Source: Ascidiella aspersa
Taxonomy: Eukaryota
Reading direction: 5' to 3'
DNA length: 64,000 nucleotides
Assembly: GCA_963924565.1 (NCBI GenBank)
Contig: OZ004609.1
Span: 26,474,001 to 26,538,000 of the forward strand
This document shows positions 1 through 64,000 of the stretch, piece by piece; the stretch's first letter is position 1, and each line of letters begins with the position of its first letter. The position numbers and the translations under genes were made by a program. A model generated the notes under the pieces. It was given only the letters and a program-made list of their open reading frames with translations, did no database searches and was not told where the DNA came from.

Positions 1-3000
1 ATGGGTATGCGCCAAAAAACATTTTTTACCATGGTTGATTAAAAATCAATAATGTAAAGGGTTGGATCATGTGATCACTATGGATCTGCACCAAAAAGAA
101 ATTCAAGGGTTTTTTGATGTTCCTGTTGACAATTTGAGAGCCTCGCCGTTTTTAATGCAGTATATACAAGACCAGGTTTGTTCGTTTTCTAATGTTTGAA
201 GGTTAACTTTAGGCTAATGCAAAATTTACCTGCAACTTTTTGTCCAAGCGCACAACTTATGAGGCCCTTTTTACTTTACATGTTTTATATTTTTACACCT
301 GACATACTAAAGTTCACTCTTCATTTAAATAGTTGATCTTTGATTAACCCATATTAAACTAATCCTAATAAGAATCCTCCTCCTACAGCCTTCAACATTT
401 TAATTAATTTTTACCTCCAATCAACAGATTCCTGACTATAGGAATGCCGTTATTGTGGCCAAGACACCTGCGTCTGCCAAGAAGGCTCAGTCTTATGCCG
501 AGCGTCTGCGCTTAGGCATTGCTGTTATTCACGGAGAACCACAAGACTTTGACTTCGATCAAGAAGATGGCAGACAGTCTCCACCCCCTTTGGAACCCGA
601 GTCACTTTCACCACAATCCCCAAACAGACCCTCTACATCTGCTGGCGGTGATAACTCAAAGCGAATTGAGGCAATGTTATTAGGTAGAAAATTTTTAACA
701 TAGTTTTGTTTCGTCTTACAAGCCAAAGCCCTGTAGTTAATCTACATTTAAAACTCATTTTTAAGTTAATAGGAGAATGCAGATGCCCAATATCTTGGTC
801 GTAAATTCCTTAATTTGTTACTTGCAAATTAACTGGTACCCAATTTTAATTCAGAGCGCAAAGGTGCATTTGCTGGCGTGGCTCGACACAGAAGTGTTTC
901 AACGGGACATTTTGAAGCCATAGAAATTCCAGTGCTGACTGCTAAGGAAAAGCCCCCAATAAATGTTGTTGGAGATGTTGGTGGTAAAATTGCAATCATT
1001 GTAGTAAGTGTCTTTGGTAATCTCTTGTAAAGGCATGCCTTGCTCTTTCACATCAATAAAATTTTATCATCTTTTTTAGGATGACATCATTGACGACATT
1101 GACCCATTTGTTGCGGCTGCTGGAATTTTAAAGGAAAGAGGTGCTTACAAGGTAACCTTAGGCAGATTTTTTTTGTAAAAATTTATAGGTTTCCGAATTA
1201 TAAAGCATAATTCGTTCTTCAAACTCACTGTTTTTCAACTTATGGGTTGCAACATAGGCGTCGAACTTTCAAAATCCCAGGGCGTTTTTTTAACCAGTCC
1301 TCAAAAAGGGGATTCCCGAAATTTCAACTTAGGGAATTCCCCTATTTTCCTTCTGACGTTAATGAATAATGACGTCATAAAATAGTTACGGGAATGACGT
1401 CATAAATATATAACCAGACACATCAAATTAACGTCCAGCAAAAGCGAACCTTTAAGACGCAAAGCGAACTCGTGCTTTGAAACAGCTTAGTGTGCAATCG
1501 TGAACTTCAGGCGAAAAACTAAACCAAGACGGAGAATATGTGTGATTGATTTTGATAGAATCCTGTTTCGATTATCAGCAGCGCAGTTTCCCAAGTTTCA
1601 TGTTCGGGACCACGCTAAATTACAAGCACGTCTTTCGCCACCTGCAACACGAAGATCGTTTTTCCGTCCGGCCCTCAATACGCTACCGCTCATTACCAAC
1701 AAAATGTAGCAGGTCTCTCTCGTTAACCGATTTTGCGATTCCGTATACTATAGGTTTAAAACAACCGTTATGTCTCCTGTAATTTCGTCAGAAATAATTG
1801 TACTCAAAGCTAATGCGGGCTTTGTCCTGCATTTAAATGATGAAGGACCAAGGTTAGTGCCAATCTACTTTGAGCAGTGTTCGTAACTTATTATCCGCCA
1901 TAGCATATAAGACACGTGCACAAGGAGCGAGCGAAGCGAGGGCAAATTTTTTGCGCTGTAACGATATTAAAAATTAAAGAGACTTGTGCGAGAGCAGTCA
2001 GCGTTATTGAACAAGGTTTTTATATGTGTTTGGCGAAAAGCTTATGTTCGGAATATTACGTTCGTTTATTTATCGATTTGAGTGACCAAACGTCTCAGCA
2101 TATTTAACATTATGAATTGTGACGCCAGACGAAGCACTGTGTTATACGACGTTTAAAAGTTATGGACTAGGTTAACACTTGTCTATTTCAGCCTCAGTAA
2201 TTGGCTTGACGCATCTTTTATCACAGAAAATTTTTCACTGAACACAAATTTCTTATCAGCTTAAGTTTAACCTACGTTAGCGCGACCTGGTATTTCATAT
2301 TTTCAGTGCGGCTTCGGTTTATTATTAGCTGCAAACGAACACTTCTGCAGAAGGTACTTCTCCCCATGTAATTCAGGAAAGTCGAGCATACTGTTAGTGA
2401 ACCACGATTGTGATACTTGCGATGTACATTGCGCTAGCTGTAATATAGTGTTTACATAGATGTAGTTGCACAGTAATTGCACACGAAACTTGGGCAAATT
2501 CCAGGGCGTTTTGACGCCCTGCGAGAAAACCAGGGCGTCAAAAAAAAAACCTCTGCACACCCACGTTCGGCGCCTATGGGTTGCGACCCGAAATTGTGTC
2601 TCCATGTTTATTTGATTGGGATCGTTTAGTGGTTTTCATTGTTACAGTTATTTCTCAATATTTCTTAACAATATTTTGTTCTAACACAAAATAACAATCT
2701 AGTGTATATTTAATAAAATGTCTAGCGTATATTTAATAAAATTTTATTTATACTCATTATTTTTAGGTTTATGTGATGGCTACCCATGGTTTACTATCTT
2801 TGGATGCACCAAGGATTCTCGAAGAATCCTCAATTGACGAGGTTTGGTTTTTGGTGATTTTATTCTTGGTAATACATTAAACGATCTGTGTCTTTGTTTA
2901 TATTACTTGGCGTATTGGGTTACAGACGGCAATTTTTGTGCTTTTACAACCCCGGTAGAACTATGACGATTACTCTTTTCGCCTAATATTTTTAAAAATC

Positions 3001-3396
3001 TTTAATCCTTAATAATGTTATGTGCTTTGCAAGCTCATCTGCTGTTGCACCGCTGCAGTCTTCCCCAGGCCAGTGAAACGTTATGGGCTTCCCGGTTAAA
3101 AACTTTATATAGCACTCCGTACCAAATTTTGTTTTCAGAAATATTGATTCTATTTGAACAAGGTTTATAAGACAACCATAGTCTTCCAGGCCCACCATCC
3201 ACGGCCGGTCATTAACTTATTTATGTTTCCAAACCAGGTGGTTGTCACCAACACGGTTCCGCACGAGCTGCAGAAGCTGCAGTGCCACAAGATCAAGACG
3301 GTCGACATCTCCTTCATCATGTCCGAAGCGATCCGTCGCATCCACAACGGCGAGAGCATGAGTTACTTGTTCCGCGATATTTCCATCGACGACTGA
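1..3396 (+). CDS. PRPSAP: Phosphoribosyl pyrophosphate synthase-associated protein (PRPSAP1/2-like), 5' part outside window
   Basis: Exons <1-4, 60-175, 428-683, 855-1003, 1080-1151, 2767-2841, 3238-3396, all GT-AG and phase-consistent (the 683 donor is the least certain). Translation includes [64 protein letters not shown] and [23 protein letters not shown], characteristic of PRPSAP rather than catalytic PRPS. Confidence 0.95.
1253..2578. mobile_element. Non-autonomous hAT-like element (1.3 kb) nested in an older MITE in a PRPSAP intron
   Basis: TIR CATAGGCGTCGAAC / GTTCGGCGCCTATG (13/14 match); 8-bp TSD ggttgcaa (1245-1252) / ggttgcga (2579-2586); CCAGGGCGT motifs near both ends. Confidence 0.8.
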
Positions 3397-53242: not shown

Positions 53243-54562
53243 AACTAAAAGCTATTATTGCAAACTTGCACAAAACACGCGGAGTAAGGATTAGCAATAC
53301 TAGGCAATTAGTTCGCATGTTTGTTCATCATTAAACTTTATCCCTTAGTTGAAATCCTGAACACTCTACTCAGCAAACAACACACTTTAAACTTTAAAGC
53401 AATAGCTTGTTATTAGTTAGCGATAACTTTTAAATCATAAAAAGTTAAAGCTACACTAATCCTTCCTGTGTGCAACCTGACAAAATTGCGACTAAGAGTG
53501 GTCTTTTTCATTGTTGCATATTTGAAGAAATAGTTGTGCAGCGTTTCCCTTTGTTTGAAAATGAACATGAGTTATGGTTTACTAAATATGAAAAATTTCT
53601 ATTGTAATGGAGTCTAACAACCGCCATTTAAGAAACTAATGCTCCTCCCACAGCACACACACTCGCGTCGCTCAATTCATTTTCGGCAAGATCCAACTCA
53701 TTTATTTGACACTAAAACTCTTAAGCGCGACTCTCCCAAATATGCTCAATTGCACAAAAAACACGAAGTATTACTACGGCTAATTGGCATATTATTTATA
53801 TTTTTGCGTAAATCTAAGAACACTGTTGTAAGTACACTCTGTTAGAAAAACCAAAAATGAAGGCGTAAAACACGTGAAGTTCGTGAAGCATTTCAAAAGA
53901 AACAGTTATAAGCCTACTTATGGAACGAGGTGACAGTTGATTGAGGCCCAAATTACATACAAACTGGACGTCGATTAGGTACACCAATCTAGCATTACCA
54001 ACAAATGTACCGTAGTTTATACGATCAAAAATACATTTTGTATTCCATTCGACATTTTGCCTTTAGGTTGAAACCTATTAAAATATTTGTTTCAAAAATT
54101 ACCGCCGTAACGTTGAACGCTGATAAAACGTCTTGAAACAAAACCCACCCTTTCTATTTTTTCTTTGTTTGTGTTTTGATTTTGCAAGTAGAAAAAAAAT
54201 TGTTCACGGTCACTGGCATTCGAAGTAACATTGACTAAAAACGTATTGACACAGTGGCAACATAGATTTGTACATTTTAGTCAACATGTAGCCTAACGTT
54301 TATATTTTGTAAATTTTGCACGTATTTGTGAGAGAGCATAAATATGTTGGCAACTTTACAACTTGGTCGATTGAGTATTGCAATGTCAGTTTGGAAAACA
54401 CATTTTGTGACAATAGACGAGGCGACTCTGACGTAATAGTTCATTGTTGGAGCGATGTGACTCATGATGTGTGGATGCAAAGAGATAAATACCGCTGCAA
54501 GCAGTTTCACAGTAACTGCAAGACGTCCTCATACCAATACATCTGTATCAAATATGCTCCTC

Positions 54563-57500
54563 TCAATATGTCGCACAAAGGTATCGGACTTCATAGTCGT
54601 GACAGCGCCCGGACGACTGGTCTCTGTTGTCGCACAGCAGTCCGTGGTAAACGCTCAACCTCTTCAACGCGTCGCCGCTCTTCTCGTATGGAGTTTTAGA
54701 TCCTATGACGCGAGCCTCAATTTTGATTGGGGTTCTGGAGAAATAACATAGGCAAACGTTTGAGCTAACCAAAAACAACGCGAATGCTACTTCTGTCAAA
54801 ATCTTAGCCAAAATAGATTCCTCAATTCCTGCTTAAAGGTTAAAGTCATCAACTGACATATTGCCTTTTCCGAAGCGAGGTATGGAAAGATAATACACCA
54901 CAAGTTGTTGAATACCAAATTTTCAAGGCCGATCACATTCAACTTGTAAGTAGCCTATATACTACCTCACACAAGGCACAAGTAATGATATGGCATAAAT
55001 TGAAATTTCAGGCTTATGAATGCTACTTGCATCGACACGTTGTTAACTGAAATACACAGTGTTGCTTTGTTATAACCAACCTGCATCGAAGGTAGCCTAA
55101 CGCTCGCGCGGTGCCTACAGATTCCACCTCCAAGTGACCGCGAGATGGCGTGCTTAAGTTGCTCCATCTCGACCAAACTCCTTTCTGTTGCTCGTCATTG
55201 AGTCTTCTATCATTCACTAAAATAAATATATTATTTAAGAAATGTGGTGGCTTACATATAACACAGATTTCAGGGCATTTTGAATAGTGTGCGTTCAACT
55301 TAATGATTTTAATTTTCACGCATCATAAAGCACAGGTAAAATGTAAGATGCCCGGTTAAACAATATATACGACACGTGTAGCCATATAAAATTTATTCGC
55401 TGTTCACAAAATAAATGAATGTATATTGCTTTATAATATCACTTACTGTTGCGACAATAGAATCGCACTCTGTAGTCGTGGCATTTGCCGTTTTCCTGGT
55501 GGTTTCCTCTGCATATCAGACCACGTTTGGTGTTAAATTCTTCAAATACATCGCCGGTGTCCATGGCTGGCACCTATTAAGGTAGAAATATAAATTGACT
55601 TTAATCACTGATTAACAGTTGTAGCTTCCATTAAATAAAAGCTTGATGTTAAAATTTGATAAATGCCCTGTTACCTGTGGGCATCTTACGTAAAAGGGCG
55701 TACTTTAAACTCAGTAAATTTTGCCCGTTTAAAAGTTCGACATAACACCTTCGATCTGTTACAAAGCCGTTACCGCTTTTAACTGTTACATAACTTGTAA
55801 TGAATTTTCCTTACATTTTCGGCCGTTGAGATTTAATTCACTCTCTAAAACCAACAACCGCATTTCTTACCCCGTCACTGGTCTGAGCTTGAATGTAGAG
55901 GGGAAAGTGGCAAACTTGTGGCCGGCTTTCCAGCAGGTAGTCGCTTAAAGATTCGATGTCGTCGTTTTCTGGAGACGTGGGCGTTTGACGATCCATCCAA
56001 CTTGTCCAATAGCAGTCCAAGCCTGATTACAACATTTTTGTCGCTTTTTCAACTATGTATATATAGCTCTTTTCAGTTTTGTTGTAAGTTGAATACGCGC
56101 TATACGCGTGTGGTGTCTTGAACAAATTAAATTCTGCAATGCGCAATCTATAGAGCGCAGTCAGACTAAAAGAGCTAAACAACTTGATGAAAATGATCGC
56201 TACAAAATCGATAAGGTTGAACACAAGGCCCGCGGTTATAATATCACATCACAACACTAATTCCGTGTCACATGGTCACCTAATGTTTCTATGTGGCTGA
56301 TGCATAAGTTATTTTTAACGTTTTATAACTTCTTTGCGATGGTATGAAAGGTTATATATGGAATTGTTGATAGTGCCATATGTCACAGAAGATCTGCCAT
56401 GTCAGTTTAAAATTGTAACTAAAAGAGTCGACCTATTTCCTGCAATGGCATGCTTCGTGGTAATTTGTAAGCGTGCCTTAATTAAAATGTTTTTGAAAAA
56501 TGGCTGTGATCATTACAACTGTACCATATGTACGGTACTATTTGAGAAAATATATTTATTGCATTCTTAATCTAGTACAACGTGCGGTTGCAAAATTCCC
56601 ACAGTGATGGGTACGGTGACCTGTGATTAGTAAAAGCGGTTAAAATGCCATTTTTATGTTGCAAATAATGTATTTGCATAACCTTGGATATACTGAAACG
56701 TCGATGAACTCACTTTGCTTGGAGTTTGGAACAGACGAAGGAATTGTTCCTTTCGGACATAGAAAACGAACCTTTTTCGGCAAAGTGTTCGTCTTGGACA
56801 AAGATCGCACCTGTTAGAAAACATGCCCTTCATTTGTCCTATTCGGAAAACTTTTTTACAGCTTTTTGGCAGTTTATTAATCAACGTTAACTGTAATATA
56901 AAGGCCTAATTTTCTACAATTCAATATGCCATCAATGTGGCTTTGATGAATCAGTTTTGTGAGGCCGCAAAATTTGATTACCTGCGTGTCCAACGGGTTT
57001 GGGCAAACGCTATCAGAGTTGTATTTTCGTTGTTTGAGCAACTTATCGGCGACTGTATTCGTTCCGAGCAAAAACCACCGTGTCCACTGTCCGTCTGCAA
57101 AAACATACCAAGTAGACGCCTTTTCGAGTTAAATACCACGACCAACATACACAAAGCATGCAACTCGAGACTTTAAAGTTATACGAAAGCATAGGCAGAA
57201 GATTCTTTGTTAACAAAATGTTACCCGGTAAAGTCATATAGTAATCTGACTAAACGATTCACAGTAAATTATTTTTGTGACATTATCGTGATTCAAGGCT
57301 ATTTTCTGTGCATTTCTGCAAATTAGTAACCACGCGATGGCCTTTATTTAAATGACCGTTGTCATATATAGTACAAATGTCAATTTGTCATAAAACAATT
57401 TAAATATATATAATTACATAAAGCAAAACGTCAATTTGTTTTACGACCAAGACGGAGACCCTAATACCAGGGTTTACGCGTGTGCAGAATATTGCGAAAT

Positions 57501-60500
57501 CGCTGTAATCTGTACCGTGGGTTCGAATTACTTTCTCGTTGAGCTTCATTCTGAACGCATTCCCGATGGTCACAAAAACACTTATTGTCACTTAGCCTAT
57601 ATAATAAACTTTTGTGATGTAAATTAATTTAGGACATTTTCTGATCAAAATTTATCCGCTTTATCTTTTTATAGGTAAAGTTTGCGGTTCCAAAAGTATA
57701 TCAATATCAATACCTTGTCTGTTGTCCAGCTCTCGCCATTGAGTCAAATCGATGTCGGGTAAACTGGAGCACGGCACACGCTCATTATAACCTTTAGCTT
57801 GAAGCATGACCAGTGGCGCAACCGTTTCCATGCCGTCCAAGTTGTCGCAAAAAATCTTTCCTTGGCTGGCCTTTCGCAGTTCTTTCAGTTGACCTGCACA
57901 TACGGTTACTATTTAACAATTGGAATCGATATCAAAACATGCTGTGTTTGGAGTTAACGTTGGCGTAAGAAATGCCAAACAGCTTTGTCATCAATTTAGT
58001 GAAAATTTGCACACTAAAATTTAGTGAAAATTTTGCACACTAGTTAGTTTTCCATTAAACGTACTCTTGGAATAAAACATAAGATAAAAAATGTGATCAG
58101 ACGGTTCAGGAAAAATATTTTAAGGGCGGACGGTGAATTGAGATATTATAGCTAAAAAACAGGGAGACATGGGGTACAATTACTTGTTTTTGCTTTTTCT
58201 CTTGTGCTTCAATTGCCATAAAATCAAACAGGGACGTCATTCGCTACCGGTACCTATAAATCTCATTTTAAACTTTTATAGCCTACTAGGACGTATTTAC
58301 AAACAGGACAATTGTACAGTATTGTAAATTTGGCTAGTGCAGCTATTAGAAACGGTAATACAAATTTCAAATTACAAAGTACACGTTCTGCACCTTGTGA
58401 AAAACTTGTACAACACACCCCCTCTGTGCAGGTTTGTCCGTGATTATAGATATCAGAGTTTGATCAGTTATATGAGTTCAGGTCAATTGCACTTACAATT
58501 ACTCTGTTAAATGTTTCAATTACATTACAATTACAATTACATTAAAAACTGTAATTAATTACATCTATTACAATTTCTATTGCTGCTGCAAAGTGGAAAA
58601 CAGTTCATGTCTCATCGCTTCCTAAAGAAAATAAGCCCCCCCCCTCATTCAAACTTCAATTTTCTCAATATCAATGTAGTGAGCTAAAATTTTAGCAAAA
58701 TATAATCACAATTAAAATTACACAGAATAAAACTGCTTTAATTGCATTACAATTAAAATTACAAATTGCAATTGATCCAACTCTGAGACATACACTCATT
58801 GGTCTACTCACCGATGCTGAACTGTCCTGGGTTTTCGTGCCAGAAGCGATCTCCCTTTCGTAGCTCTCTAAACTGGAGGGCGAGTATGCAGCCGAACACA
58901 GGACCCACCGAGCCACCTTCTACCGGTGATTCGGCAAGACCGCCCACGTACAGATCGATGTCGTCCACTTGACTTGCAACCAATGGTAAATTAAGTTATT
59001 TTCACACAGAGGAACTTCTACAATGCAACGCACGGTTTTTGTGTGAAAGAACGGTCAAAAGGGCGTGACCTATTAAATTGCAATCATTTGCTTTTATTGG
59101 CAATAAACTTGAAGAGATCAGGGGCCAATCGTTATGCTATAATGACATTTGATTTATTGGAATTGTGAAGCACAACATGTACATTCGCACAACATAATTA
59201 GAGATCATCTTTTTTGAAATATATAAGTTAAAGAAGAAAATTGGAGTACTATCCTCATGTATTAGACCAGGGGTCGGCAACCTTTTTTACAATGCGGACC
59301 TTTTTTACAATGCGGTTTAAAACTCAAATTTTTGTGGCGGACCGGCCTTTAAAAACAAATGTTTAGTAAAGAAAATTTCAATGCGAAGTTTAAGCTTGTT
59401 TTGTGCAAAGAGATGTTCCCGTCTGGAAATTATTAAACTTAATGAAACCCGCGGGGTTAATCACCCTTTATAGTATACCATTAAATTACATTTGTATACA
59501 GTGGTGGGATTCAAATTTTGTCAGCCGGTTCTATTACAAATGTCATATTTTTCAGCTGGTTCTGTTATAAAAAGTCATATTATTAGGCAAATAAACTGAT
59601 TATTTTTTATACATACGGCAGAACTTCGTTTTATGAAGATAAATAGAATGCAGTGCAATAGCAAAATAAAGCAGCAGTCGTCTCATGAGTTGTACTTATG
59701 ACGCAACAATTCAAATTTCAGACAAACAATCACAAAAGGAAAATTACTAATACTGTAAAAATTAACATCCTGTGTAACTGTTACGTGCGAACTTAACCAT
59801 CGCACTTATGCTATCTCTGGATACGTGTTAATTGTGTGTTTGTGCAGCGTAACGATTTCCGTACGTTTGGACGACGGTTGGAACTCAAATATTTCACAGT
59901 TGAAACAACAACCACGTTTCTGAAATCTGACGCAATTTCAGCTAATGTAATGATTGCATCATCCTGATCCATGGCGCAATGACCATTTTTTTATATGCGA
60001 ATAACATCTGATATAACACTAAAACACAAAAATGAAAAAACTATGGAACATATTTCAACTATGGAGCATATTCGAACGAAAGTCAATGTGTTTTAATAAT
60101 AAAAATACATTTAATTGTTTTTGACTTTTTTCAAGGTGTTTATGCACAGTTCGGGTTTAAATCAAAGTTCTATTTTGGCAACCCTGTTACGGACCGGTAG
60201 CAAACTCCTTGCGGACCGGCGGTTGCCGACCACTGTATTAGACTACATGCAAGTACACAACAGATAACTCCACATGGTACCCCAATAAAGACCGCAGCAC
60301 TCTCAATGAAGAAAATAATGAGTCTTTAAAAAACAACTCACTTGTATACGACTTGTAGTTTCGCGAGGTTGAACGGCGTCATGTCATCCGACAGGTCCTC
60401 CCAGTTGATGGCTCGCGGCATTCCGCAGAGTTCGCGGAACTCGTTGTACGGGGCGAGTCCGTGCTCCCGGCCGCGCTGGATGTTGATCGCAAACAGGTCC

Positions 60501-63500
60501 TGGCCGGGTTTGGTCGACGACTCGAACATCCGGCTGCAATACCAAAGCTTTCATTGCAACTATACATAAAGATGTCTGGCACTTGGTATTTTATTTCAAT
60601 ATCGTAACCCGATATTTTGGGAAAACCTATAATGGAACCTAAATACCATTTTTAGAACATTTATCGCCCTTTTTACAAAATACCCGGTATTTTACTCGAA
60701 TTTTTAATTTTTAGTGTTACAGGGCAAACGGAGCCTACGACTGCCGGGTTGGATATTAAATTACGTCATTACTATGATCTAACAAGCAAAATGGATGAAA
60801 AAAAGAAAGTGCAATTTGCACCCCTACCACCCGCGTATCGGACAAGTATGATGCTGCTATCAGGCTTTCCGCTATTATCCAATATAATAGGACATTCGTT
60901 GTTTCAAAAAAGAAGATGATAAATAAAGACGCCAAAATTGCTTCTGTAACATTTTAATGAGGTGCTATTCGTGAGCAGATTCTCCAAATTATGGATTCCA
61001 GATTAATCCTTAATACAGCGCTATGAAACATTAAGAACACAAATGTGACCTTAGTATAATTTCCGAATTCGTATTGTATACAAACTCCAATGCGCCTACT
61101 TTCTGATGTCGGTAACAAAGGAGAGGTCAGTTTCGAAAGCTTTGTCCTCCGAAAGGCCCCTAAGAATGGACGGCGTGGTCATATTGAGGACGGCCTGCTG
61201 TTGGAAAAGTGCCTTGAACGTTGGAATCTTAGGGTGCTTCGGTGTGACGTAATCAGCTTCTGGTCGAAAAAAGAACTTTCCAACCTGGCTGTGACCGTAT
61301 CTGAACAATGTGAAAATCAACAAACAAGGGTCATAATCGCTGTCACGAGTTTTTCCAAAACAGCAACATAAAAAAATACATCTAAAGCGGTTTTAATGGT
61401 ACAATTGTTCTTCCGGCCAAAATTTAGTAAAACGTTTCGACCACCTACTCTGGCAATCTCTTTAGGGCAATAATTGCAACTAAAGGCGAAAACATATATA
61501 TACCAGACAAACATTAAAGCGGTTTTGTTTGGGACAAGGATTTATTTTGTATGGATCGAAATGTAATTTACATGCATCGAAAAGCTTAGCAATGAGCGTA
61601 GCGCCAATAGTTATCGTTTTCTCAACCGGTCCAAAGATTTAACAGTATGGCAAGATGTAGTACATGTGTTGAGTAGTGAATACATAATGCTAGATATTAT
61701 CTAATTGTCTGTACAACCATCATGTAGCATAATTATCCTTTTATACGTGGACAATACCGTAGGGCGGCGGTTGTAAAGGAATTTGCGATGGTTGCGTCCA
61801 CTGATGCGTCGTAACCGTAGTAATAACCGTGTCGGACAAGTTCCAGGCCGTACCGCTTCATTAGTGTTGGGCCAATCAGAGGGGGGAGAAATTCACTGAA
61901 AACAATAAATCATCTTAGCAAAACTGAAAAACCCGTTTGTTTTAGTACTACTTTAGAGATGTTCAAAGGATTACAGTTAAAAGCAATACTTTTTTCTTAT
62001 AATGAACTACACCTATTCATGTAAATTAATACATACTCGAAGCAAAGTTAGTCTTAATGGTATACATAGATTTTACTTGGCATTGCTTTATGTGATAAAA
62101 AGCTAACGTTGAAAGACTAAACAACGTAAAGATATATAAAAACGAAAACATATCCACTATAACAAATATTTTCACATGCTAAATAACTTTAAAGTCTTAT
62201 TCATATATTTAAAAGTGTAAGTTTTTTTTTTAGGTTTTCACTTACTCGTAAGTTATGATTTGAAAGATTGCAGAAAGAATCCTTTTCGCTTCCTGAAAAA
62301 CAATCTCAGAGCTCCAGGATGGATTAAGGCTCTTTAGTCGCCTCCCGACCCTGTTGTGCTCCCTAGCGAATATCAGGTGCGTGGAAGATAGGCCGATGTT
62401 TTCGTTTGTTCGCACGTCCCCTGTTACAAAATAACCAGCAACATGTTTCAACAAAGAATGAGTTTAATTCCATCTTATAGGTTTAGGCAGAAAGTATCGT
62501 TTAGGACGCCCTGCTGTAGTGAATATGTAGTATAGTCAAGGCCAGCGCTCACCTTCCTGAGTTTAACATTTCGGCTAAGGTTATATCCTTTTGCTTGGAC
62601 CGAAACTTATAAAGGTTATTATGCAGGAAATCAAATAATGGATTGGCGCATCTCTTCCAGAAAAAAAAACATTTACACTTTACCAACCATATAGACTGTA
62701 TATTTTTGACTTGAACGTTGGTAAACACTTCATACGCACGAAATATTATCAGAGAGTATCCAGACGATGGCATTGGCAGTAATGTCACGGTCAAATTCCC
62801 ATTATAACGAACAGGCTGCGTAACTTCAAAGTTTGTCAATTCTTGTGATGGATACGATTATACCATGTTACAACATAATTACGGCAGGCCAGACGAGAAC
62901 CTTAATCTTCTTGTTGTTTTTGGTGCTAATCAGCTTACCTGAAACAAAGCATGTTGCTCCTGTTGGATTGAGGTCCTTAAGACAGGATATTTTCTGGGCG
63001 ATCTTGTGCGGAATTTCCGTTTTGGTCGGTAGATTTTGATGTTTTTTACGGAACGGGCATCCACTTTCGCTGTTTGCATTAGGTCCAGATTTTAAAAGAA
63101 GTTCCCCGCTTTCTGAAACCATCCACGAAACGAATTATGATTGCACATTGATGCTTGCATTAGAATTAAAAGCAGATATTAAAGATTTGTTTACACAAAA
63201 ACAACTTTTCCGCGATTTGAAATTGCTATTCAACAAACCGATAGGAACCGTGACAAAGCAATTGACTTCACACGGGATCAAATTTTATACAATTATGTTA
63301 AAATCGCGTAACGTTTTAATTCCATTTAACGCCTTAGATTCAGCATTTAGTAAACTTTCTCCTATAGTACTACAGGCGGAAATGGAAAGTAAGCCAATTT
63401 GTAGCCTTTACGTAAAGTTACATTGCGTAGATAATCGTGATATCCTGTGGTCATATTAAATCACAATTCCGGTAGAAATCGTGCCTACAGCTTAATGTAA

Positions 63501-64000
63501 GTGTTTTTATTTTCGAATGCGTATTATAAAACATAGTGATGTTGCAGTTGTGACGCTTGCGTTTAACAAACTTACAAATGATTGAAGGCAAAGTGTAAAC
63601 GCAATATGTATAAACACAAAACATCATAATATCCTTAGATAATTACATACCATTACACCTTTCTCACGAATCTCATCTCACTATCAAGCTATCATCCAAC
63701 AATTTATGCAATAGAGAGCTTAAGAGTCTACCAATTGTTTAGCGAAAAATGCCACAAGTTTACCGGAGTTTGGGTCCCTCAAGGCATCCAGAAATTCTCG
63801 GGTCGTCCCGTATATGGTCGTCCCGTCGATGTAGGCTGAAAGTGAAGTAATCTGCTCCGTCGGAAGCTCGTCACATTCCTCGGCGATCTGGCTGCCCATT
63901 AGCGGAATGCATTGCACCTCGCCCTTGTAGAAGGGGTCGAAACGCGAAATGGGAACGTTGATGCACGACGCACTGGGCATCTCGCAGCTGGTGCAGTTTA
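54563..64000 (-). CDS. Animal heme peroxidase (peroxidase-cyclooxygenase superfamily) with three C-terminal WxxW (Mucin2_WxxW/CysD, CILP-type) domains; 5' part outside window
   Basis: Exons >64000-63764, 63112-62939, 62420-62246, 61895-61758, 61300-61100, 60533-60342, 58972-58812, 57893-57714 (peroxidase), then 57094-56982, 56810-56714, 56022-55871, 55573-55447, 55216-55081, 54734-54563 (WxxW); all GT-AG and phase-consistent. Peroxidase motifs [23 protein letters not shown] (distal Arg, Glu), FAREHNR, AALRYGHS (proximal His), [46 protein letters not shown]. Confidence 0.92.
58454..58785. mobile_element. Old MITE with CAATTAC subterminal repeats in a peroxidase intron
   Basis: CAGAGTTTGATCAGTT / AATTGATCCAACTCTG inverted ends; many caattac/aattac units; TSD degraded (atagatat / agacatac). 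Confidence 0.7.
59268..60235. mobile_element. hAT (Buster/Charlie-type) non-autonomous element, 968 bp, with an internal fragment of another element
   Basis: TIR CAGGGGTCGGCAACC / GGTTGCCGACCACTG (14/15); perfect TSD tattagac (59260-59267, 60236-60243); internal CAGTGGTGGGATTC terminus-like sequence at 59499. Confidence 0.9.

Follow-up and report, generated by a model that had tools for sequence, protein, structure and literature searches.

Accessory domains usually aim animal heme peroxidases at their place of action, peroxidasin at the basement membrane and thyroid peroxidase (TPO) at the thyrocyte membrane. In peroxidasin, in sea-urchin ovoperoxidase with proteoliaisin and in nematode MLT-7, a secreted heme peroxidase is brought to the extracellular matrix and cross-links it using hydrogen peroxide (H2O2) derived from Duox. 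Here we describe a gene on the minus strand of a 64,000-nucleotide (nt) stretch of the Ascidiella aspersa genome (assembly GCA_963924565.1, contig OZ004609.1; C3:26474001-26538000 in our contig numbering, hereafter the window), whose single spliced messenger RNA (mRNA) fuses a heme peroxidase to modules of the Mucin2_WxxW family. Its proposed role is like that of these three systems in principle.

The non-catalytic tail of this protein has described counterparts of its own. The Mucin2_WxxW pattern (WxxW, C..P..I.A, GL.C, C.DY.VR..C) is common to the tail, to the CysD domains of MUC2, MUC5AC and MUC5B, to the WxxW domain of CILP and to oikosin 1; however, the mucin CysD domains have 10 Cys against 4-5 per domain here, and they interrupt a mucin whereas the domains here follow an enzyme. 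The CysD domains of MUC2 associate in pairs without covalent bonds, and a part in cross-linking of the gel is ascribed to them (PMC3195396). In the larvacean Oikopleura, the giant Fol cells are the only source both of the WxxW/CILP-like protein oikosin 1 and of the peroxidases oik21a,b, all of which are deposited in the food-concentrating filter (PMC3390340).

The catalytic fold is like that of mammalian LPO, MPO and EPO (the model of an ortholog has a template-modelling score of 0.91 to myeloperoxidase, and sequence matches reach E ~1e-76), and the distal Gln-His-Arg, the proximal His-Asn, the Ca site and the Glu ester residue are held in common. Unlike the present protein, the mammalian enzymes have an additional Asp ester, to which MPO adds a Met link, and no WxxW tail. 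DdPoxA of Dictyostelium (PDB 6erc) is secreted, has the Glu-heme ester only and has the Asp replaced, as we predict here, and serves as our working model for substrate range, although it is distant (28% identity to the ortholog model) and consists of a single domain with no tail. Peroxidasin has LRR, Ig and VWC domains, keeps both ester residues and falls in a different clade from the relatives of this gene. Peroxidasin identity was rejected because LRR, Ig and VWC domains are missing: only 47 residues stand ahead of the peroxidase domain, and the tail holds WxxW modules only.

One transcript from the peroxidase to the WxxW modules

The gene has 17 exons, the first three of which lie past the window end on the same contig and are given in window-equivalent numbering (Table 1), with a coding sequence (CDS) of 2670 nt for 889 residues (aa) and a 5' untranslated region (UTR) of 76 nt. 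Exon borders were placed at frame-keeping canonical GT/AG sites, guided by tblastn with relatives. All searches were run on single exons, and the joined frame was used for phases, residue counts and motif mapping.

At this locus the coverage of the public run X3 falls on exons only, and the run contains a spliced contig of 3451 nt at a depth of 12.3. Its successive pieces (58972-58810, 57891-57714, 57094-56980, 96 nt, 56021-55869, 55571-55447, 55216-55081 and 54734-54211) join exons 10-17, pass 57714/57094 and all five later junctions, and reach the stop. The 57714/57094 junction, on which the fusion depends and which had been proposed from the genomic letters alone, therefore exists in RNA-derived sequence, with exon 11 joined to exon 12 exactly there and in frame: G plus AC gives an Asp codon, followed by GQWTRWF. 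Both X3 joints that are listed read CT..AC on the plus strand, hence GT..AG in the direction of the gene. The numbering of the contig agrees exactly with the model, exon 10 beginning at record position 1609 (76 nt of 5' UTR plus 1532 nt of CDS) and the stop occupying 2744-2746, and the depth per bin equals exon bases times 12.3 within a few percent in all exon bins except 57600-57799, a bin that also holds a second, low-depth X3 contig. The latter, at intron 11, suggests a little unspliced RNA or DNA carry-over. Reads of a second run, X4, are sparse and lie over the last exon and the 3' UTR with their first mates on the plus strand, the orientation to be expected when a stranded library samples a minus-strand mRNA. 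One gene, through one spliced mRNA, fuses a heme peroxidase to WxxW modules. The sequence-only reading had continued the peroxidase frame through six phase-compatible exons for about 265 aa, and this is what we find: the borders are canonical GT/AG, 265 aa follow ...ELDNRQ, and the transcript neither ends before exon 12 nor leaves the WxxW exons to a separate gene, as the X3 contig runs through exons 12-17 to the stop.

The tail is composed of one shortened WxxW module and two full Mucin2_WxxW domains, each headed by its WxxW motif (WTRW, WTSW and WSRW at residues 628, 700 and 802). The profile check that had been suggested for it gave three exon matches above the Pfam Mucin2_WxxW (PF13330) cut-off of 22.4 bits, lying in two domains: the two exons of domain 2 (exons 14 and 15) score 31 and 38.5 bits, and the last exon, in domain 3 (exons 16 and 17), scores 44.7 bits. 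Exon 17 alone matches the solved MUC5B CysD 8oer (E 4.6e-5), and the PDB sequence matches are to the CysD domains of MUC5AC, MUC5B and MUC2. The three modules contain 2, 5 and 4 Cys in turn, not the ten Cys and five disulfides of the CysD of gel-forming mucins such as MUC2 (PMC3195396).

Where three WxxW domains had been counted, only the last two are full domains. The first (exons 12-13) is a shortened module in which the WxxW half (WTRW ... C.NP.D.Q) is joined straight to the closing VRFLCP strand, the GL.C...C.DY hairpin being absent, and Pfam run on exons 12 and 13 singly gave no match to it. A local profile made from family members matched positions 1-51 in the same module of the more distant relatives P0037, P0107, P0108 and P0109 (subclade B, below) with E values of 7e-10 to 7e-8, and the short module aligns position by position with its counterpart in the orthologs of Phallusia, Ciona and Clavelina, as the whole tail does end to end. 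In the AlphaFold2 model of the Phallusia ortholog P0232, its predicted local distance difference test (pLDDT) values are 73-92 and its order of strands and helices is that of the full domains minus one hairpin. Given that the short module is conserved in orthologs, that it is detected by profile in relatives and that it is confidently folded, we do not regard it as a product of decay. The same model, of a protein ~55% identical to ours, has a mean pLDDT of 86 and a predicted template-modelling score (pTM) of 0.79, with 73-94 pLDDT over the tail; Foldseek with the full ortholog model gave only catalytic-domain matches among the matches listed. In peroxidase-linked WxxW domains, an intron interrupts the domain close to profile position 46/47.

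The peroxidase domain and the ascidian family

Pfam An_peroxidase (PF03098) was matched exon by exon, over profile positions 99-499 in the window and 1-98 past its end, which amounts to 1-499 of 530 with each match above or near the 25-bit cut-off. The remaining end is supplied by exon 11, by homology to orthologs, and the exon-wise hidden Markov model (HMM) matches and ortholog homology together establish PF03098 over the whole domain; PDB sequence matches of the catalytic part are to MPO and LPO. The distal Arg and Glu (GDVRTNE), the proximal His (RYGHS) and its Asn partner, all described earlier as intact, were located in the sequence together with the Ca-site motif and the distal Gln and His. 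The last two had been sought upstream as part of a Q..DHD motif. Both are there (QFGQFITHD, 64465-64439), so the enzyme does not lack a distal His, but the Asp of the motif is replaced by Thr. We infer from this full set of catalytic residues that the enzyme is active.

Replacement of the Asp before the distal His, with the ester Glu kept, is not peculiar to this gene. The same position is Ala, Thr or Val in every member of the ascidian clade described below, while DHD is kept in TPOs, peroxidasins, amphioxus enzymes and a Nematostella protein. The pair of ester residues that characterises enzymes of the LPO, EPO and peroxidasin type is accordingly incomplete, with the Glu present and the Asp replaced, and this clade-wide pattern predicts a single-ester enzyme. 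DdPoxA, according to its authors the only characterised enzyme with a single Glu ester, has a lower redox potential; its rates with iodide and thiocyanate exceed 1e8 per M per s, bromide is a very poor substrate and chloride is not oxidised (PMC5787809). By analogy, we infer that with H2O2 the ascidian enzyme would act on iodide, on thiocyanate and on one-electron donors, tyrosine among them, that bromide would be a poor substrate and that chloride would not be oxidised. A family-wide loss of one heme ester would be a natural animal counterpart to DdPoxA.

Relatives were found by a search with exon 4 of 1.8 billion representatives, which returned mostly exon-sized fragments, then by word searches with the full-length hits; the gene's own protein was absent from the collections searched. 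A word search with the tail of the Styela protein returned that protein itself and one sawfish WxxW protein, and is too insensitive for tails. The rarity that the sequence-only reading had implied for the architecture is contradicted by public annotation, in which PF03098 with PF13330 is recorded in four other ascidian genera and further assemblies: Ciona intestinalis (XP_078492111.1, 916 aa; XP_026689400.1; XP_078483095.1), Phallusia mammillata (A0A6F9DQD3, 918 aa; CAB3263936.1), Clavelina lepadiformis (three proteins, including a 919-aa ortholog and CAK8685029.1) and Styela clava (XP_039256744, 914 aa; XP_039256344). These entries carry automatically assigned names ("peroxidase mlt-7-like", "myeloperoxidase-like", "salivary peroxidase/catechol oxidase-like", "WxxW domain-containing protein"). 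In the Ascidiella genome itself, a six-frame scan with the two Pfam models found peroxidase exons followed by same-strand WxxW exons at six further loci, which makes at least seven colinear loci with the present gene; tblastn with the Ciona ortholog confirmed the colinear order at the paralog loci and the short module at two of them. With Phallusia P0232 and Clavelina P0233 as queries, tblastn gave 17 and 13 pieces, with ~55% identity at the locus against ~41-46% at the paralog loci, and the tail exons match only the ascidian peroxidase-WxxW family.

In a maximum-likelihood tree of 58 peroxidase domains, the ascidian WxxW-bearing proteins form one clade with a Shimodaira-Hasegawa-like approximate likelihood ratio test (SH-aLRT) support of 99. 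The tree covers the relatives, and the present gene was assigned to the clade exon by exon. The clade has two subclades, and since there is a Ciona member in each, the fusion and an initial duplication are older than the divergence of the sampled ascidian orders. The orthologs in Phallusia, Ciona and Clavelina and a further relative in Styela have, as here, a signal peptide, An_peroxidase, the short module, two full WxxW domains and the Asp replaced. They differ by sequence divergence (identity is ~55% over all 17 exons for Phallusia and Clavelina) and by length, our protein having 889 aa. The second subclade (subclade B; Ciona XP_026689400.1, Clavelina CAK8685029.1 and Phallusia CAB3263936.1) has the same peroxidase and WxxW tail but comprises older paralogs with ~40% identity and an extra Cys-rich C-terminal extension, to which the Phallusia protein adds two N-terminal C-type lectin domains. 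In P0037, P0108, P0109 and P0229 of this subclade, a conserved piece ending in C...Y.(V/L)CC follows the last WxxW; it is absent from the orthogroup of the present gene. Nematostella vectensis XP_048581153.1 (cadherin, peroxidase and one WxxW) also places WxxW after the peroxidase, but lies outside the ascidian clade, keeps DHD and has other accessory domains; this fusion is probably independent. Phallusia P0031 carries two C-type lectin domains and a WxxW tail on one protein, and the amphioxus peroxidases P0153 and P0264 also carry C-type lectin. Fusion of binding modules to peroxidases seems to recur.

Among the papers listed for peroxidase and WxxW, judged by title and abstract, no study characterised the architecture. 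In the library searched, the papers on endostyle peroxidase and mucin held nothing on this gene, those listed for WxxW with tunicates did not name WxxW, and a search for CiPxt gave no papers. The architecture is already in public annotation for the ascidians examined. The sequence-only reading would have counted it against its proposal had the architecture been both widespread and characterised; it is widespread, and in these searches no characterisation was found, in agreement with that reading. New in this work are the demonstration of the junction in a transcript, a complete gene model that includes the signal peptide and the distal His, the recognition that the first module is short yet conserved, the finding that the Asp ester is lost across the clade, and the separation from TPO.

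Possible roles of the WxxW tail

The protein begins with a typical signal peptide (MLPRGIVTSLCFVVFFTATLS...) and ends in ...RYLCATY with no hydrophobic segment; neither a membrane anchor nor a C-terminal transmembrane segment was found in the spliced reading frame. Given these features, it is probably secreted, as the sequence-only reading had supposed before the upstream exons were recovered. Taken as a whole, the observations are best explained by a real, fused, secreted peroxidase of single-ester activity whose WxxW tail holds the enzyme in a secreted gel or matrix, an explanation that we would give about an even chance of being right in all its parts. Tethering by the tail is plausible by analogy with the mucin domains. 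The modules would hold the enzyme in the mucus net, the gut mucus or the tunic through CysD-like, non-covalent association with other WxxW- or CysD-bearing proteins, which are abundant in the genome. The products of Duox-like genes could supply the H2O2, and the matrix itself would then be the site at which the oxidant or the cross-link arises. Five peroxidase loci, surprisingly many copies, are followed by same-strand NAD_binding_6 (NADPH-oxidase) exons and are therefore Duox-like genes, which could serve as the H2O2 source; stand-alone WxxW arrays, in which each whole domain lies in one exon (profile 1-88), are abundant and are possible partners of the tail.

A more specific and more tentative form of this proposal, which we consider possible but would not favour, is a family of the tunicates' own, consisting of matrix-resident single-ester peroxidases with their tails in WxxW/CysD gels (the endostyle mucus net, the gut mucus and the tunic, and in larvaceans the house filter), which would use Duox H2O2 for tyrosine cross-linking or for making antimicrobial oxidants from iodide or thiocyanate. 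If true, filter-feeding mucus would have a built-in system of chemical defence or curing. Compared with the accessory domains of peroxidasin and TPO, a WxxW/CysD tail would be a different aiming device, pointing at mucus-like gels. The secretion of such gels sustains the tunicate way of life, and the closest known analogue is the Oikopleura house filter with its WxxW protein and peroxidases from the same cells. Since the gene is conserved, expressed and duplicated and has a tractable Ciona ortholog, the idea is directly testable.

Several points weigh against the tethering proposal. The transcript evidence is an assembled contig rather than a single long read, and the only run on record as RNA sequencing (RNA-seq), X4, supplied just 37 reads, none of which spans a junction. 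Without the Asp ester, catalysis could be weak or altered. With 4-5 Cys in the WxxW domains here against 10 in mammalian CysD, the behaviour of CysD may not transfer; a prediction of a two-copy complex of WxxW domain 3 of P0232 gave no answer, and hence evidence neither way; and the C-mannosylation site predicted in MUC2 CysD proved to carry no modification (PMC3195396).

Of the alternatives, the one that survives best, although we think it unlikely, is that the peroxidase is soluble and secreted and that the tail serves self-association into dimers or oligomers, or acts as a folding and export handle under quality control of C-mannosylated WxxW. That CysD domains dimerise with themselves (PMC3195396) fits the former; for the latter, WxxW is the C-mannosylation sequon, and the presence of a single DPY19-type C-mannosyltransferase gene makes the modification possible in principle. 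The folded short module (pLDDT 73-92) might also reflect a fixed place beside the catalytic domain, although the model gave no inter-domain confidence. However, three modules whose order is kept across ascidian orders exceed the needs of an export tag, and the lectin modules on other invertebrate-chordate peroxidases (Phallusia, amphioxus) point to targeting.

Slightly less probable still is an immune effector resembling peroxinectin, released from blood cells or epithelia on challenge, whose tail would bind microbial or cell-surface glycans while oxidants derived from iodide or thiocyanate kill. The single-ester enzyme DdPoxA is antibacterial (PMC5787809), duplication to at least seven loci in this lineage is of a kind often seen in immune gene families, and the protein contains a KGD motif; induction by lipopolysaccharide is on record for a Ciona peroxinectin, which may or may not belong to this clade (Vizzini 2013, cited in PMC5465252). 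However, the KGD falls in the universally conserved R.GDRFW stretch, and glycan binding is not established for WxxW domains.

The sequence-only reading had also suggested that the enzyme might link endostyle iodination with feeding-net mucus. Such a part in iodination, coupling thyroid-type chemistry to the feeding net, would suit a single-ester peroxidase, which by analogy should oxidise iodide well, and the endostyle of ascidians is an iodinating organ as well as the source of the mucus net (PMC9953650, PMC6109156). We nevertheless consider it improbable. The endostyle TPO genes of Ciona and Halocynthia (CiTPO and HrTPO) carry EGF/sushi domains and group, in the 58-domain tree, with vertebrate EPO-like enzymes beside the peroxidasins and apart from the WxxW clade, and a TPO ortholog of this genome's own lies on contig C8, its exons showing 61-86% identity to CiTPO where the present gene reaches 33%. 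With TPO orthologs in a separate clade and the genome's own on another contig, the link to endostyle iodination is unsupported. TPO, CiTPO and HrTPO have the animal heme peroxidase domain in common with this gene, but their EGF/sushi (and transmembrane) tails, their retained DHD and their clade are not shared. TPO identity was itself rejected on the missing CCP/EGF tail, the missing DHD motif, the separate clade of the relatives and the TPO ortholog on C8.

That a peroxidase gene and a neighbouring gene for a small WxxW protein were wrongly joined, or that the tail is made of pseudo-exons, is highly improbable: the contig is an assembled one and exons 12, 13 and 16 have no Pfam match singly, but that contig crosses every junction in frame at canonical GT/AG sites with uniform depth, a protein with these parts in the same order is annotated in four further ascidian species, and there is no stop and no start between peroxidase and tail.

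Gene model and related loci

Table 1. Exons of the peroxidase-WxxW gene (window numbering, or window-equivalent where stated) and related loci in the same genome (contig coordinates).
Feature	Location	Strand	Content	Basis
Exon 1	66255 (ATG)-66162	minus	window-equivalent	
Exon 2	65233-65103	minus	window-equivalent	
Exon 3	64585-64414	minus	window-equivalent; distal QFGQFITHD at 64465-64439	
Exon 4	64018 (window-equivalent)-63764 (63764-64000 in window; window end cuts exon)	minus	An_peroxidase ~93-180; Ca-site motif	Pfam An_peroxidase, E 1e-15 in window, 2e-16 whole exon frame
Exon 5	63112-62939	minus	peroxidase variable loop; last base opens the G of GDVRTNE	no Pfam match alone; tblastn to Ciona P0146 residues 225-280, 40% identity; single frame-keeping GT/AG pair on either side
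Exon 6	62420-62246	minus	distal Arg and heme-linking Glu (GDVRTNE)	Pfam An_peroxidase 209-271, E 1e-24
Exon 7	61895-61758	minus	peroxidase domain	Pfam 268-315, E 1.5e-10
Exon 8	61300-61100	minus	proximal His (RYGHS); R codon spans exon 7/8 junction	Pfam 312-379, E 2e-4; 55% identity to Ciona P0225
Exon 9	60533-60342	minus	Asn partner of proximal His	Pfam 381-444, E 2e-20
Exon 10	58972-58812	minus	peroxidase domain	Pfam 445-499, E 7e-20; X3 contig piece 58810-58972
Exon 11	57893-57714	minus	peroxidase domain end; last base is first base of Asp codon finished by exon 12	X3 contig piece 57714-57891, then directly 57094; no Pfam match alone
Exon 12	57094-56982	minus	first half of short WxxW module (WTRW)	X3 contig piece; best matches in ascidian family only; aligns with orthologs; no Pfam match alone
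Exon 13	56810-56714	minus	closing part of short module and linker	kept in orthologs; X3 depth in bins 56600-56999 equals expectation from exon 13; no Pfam match alone
Exon 14	56022-55871	minus	WxxW domain 2, N-terminal half (WTSW)	Pfam Mucin2_WxxW 1-44 (match 56026-55841), E 4e-7; X3 piece
Exon 15	55573-55447	minus	WxxW domain 2, C-terminal half (GLIC...)	Pfam 49-88 (match 55573-55442), E 2e-9; X3 joint 55216/55447
Exon 16	55216-55081	minus	linker and WxxW domain 3, N-terminal half (WSRW)	X3 joints 54734/55081 and 55216/55447; aligns with orthologs; no Pfam match alone
Exon 17	54734-54563	minus	WxxW domain 3, C-terminal half; stop 54565-54563	Pfam 34-88 (match 54832-54566), E 2e-11
3' UTR	54562-54211 at least	minus		X3 piece 54211-54734 (record positions 2575-3094 of 3451; contig runs 357 nt further); X4 stranded RNA reads at 54200-54800
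Paralog locus	C3:26048454-26058451	minus		six-frame Pfam scan
Paralog locus	C3:26065175-26073993	plus		six-frame Pfam scan
Paralog locus	C7:22757483-22767769	plus		six-frame Pfam scan
Paralog locus	C7:22778387-22790329	plus		six-frame Pfam scan
Paralog locus	C7:22810454-22817718	plus		six-frame Pfam scan
Paralog locus	C7:22830247-22837646	minus		six-frame Pfam scan
Duox-like loci	C4:12719362-12733447, C4:10257224-10271946, C4:33779597-33815132, C8:5852987-5884241, C8:5904062-5935942			
WxxW arrays	C7:27480629-27528192, C8:18924350-18929935, C1:23317113-23324903, C1:4379175-4381813, C4:9811708-9820354, C3:28154808-28170883			
TPO ortholog	C8:9726885-9750486			
DPY19-type gene	C4:11415979-11420275			

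No runs of N were met in the stretch. Upstream of the gene, a TATAAAA box stands at window-equivalent 66324, ~70 nt upstream of the ATG and near the contig start calculated from the 76-nt 5' UTR. Introns 9 and 10 contain repeats (58400-58800 and 59200-60199) at which the DNA-type runs X1 and X2 reach depths in the thousands with many internal joints; these are high-copy and probably transposable elements. In intron 11, at 57591-57628 of the window, runs X2 and X3 both lack 36 nt and have 3 other letters in their place, which is probably an indel polymorphism.

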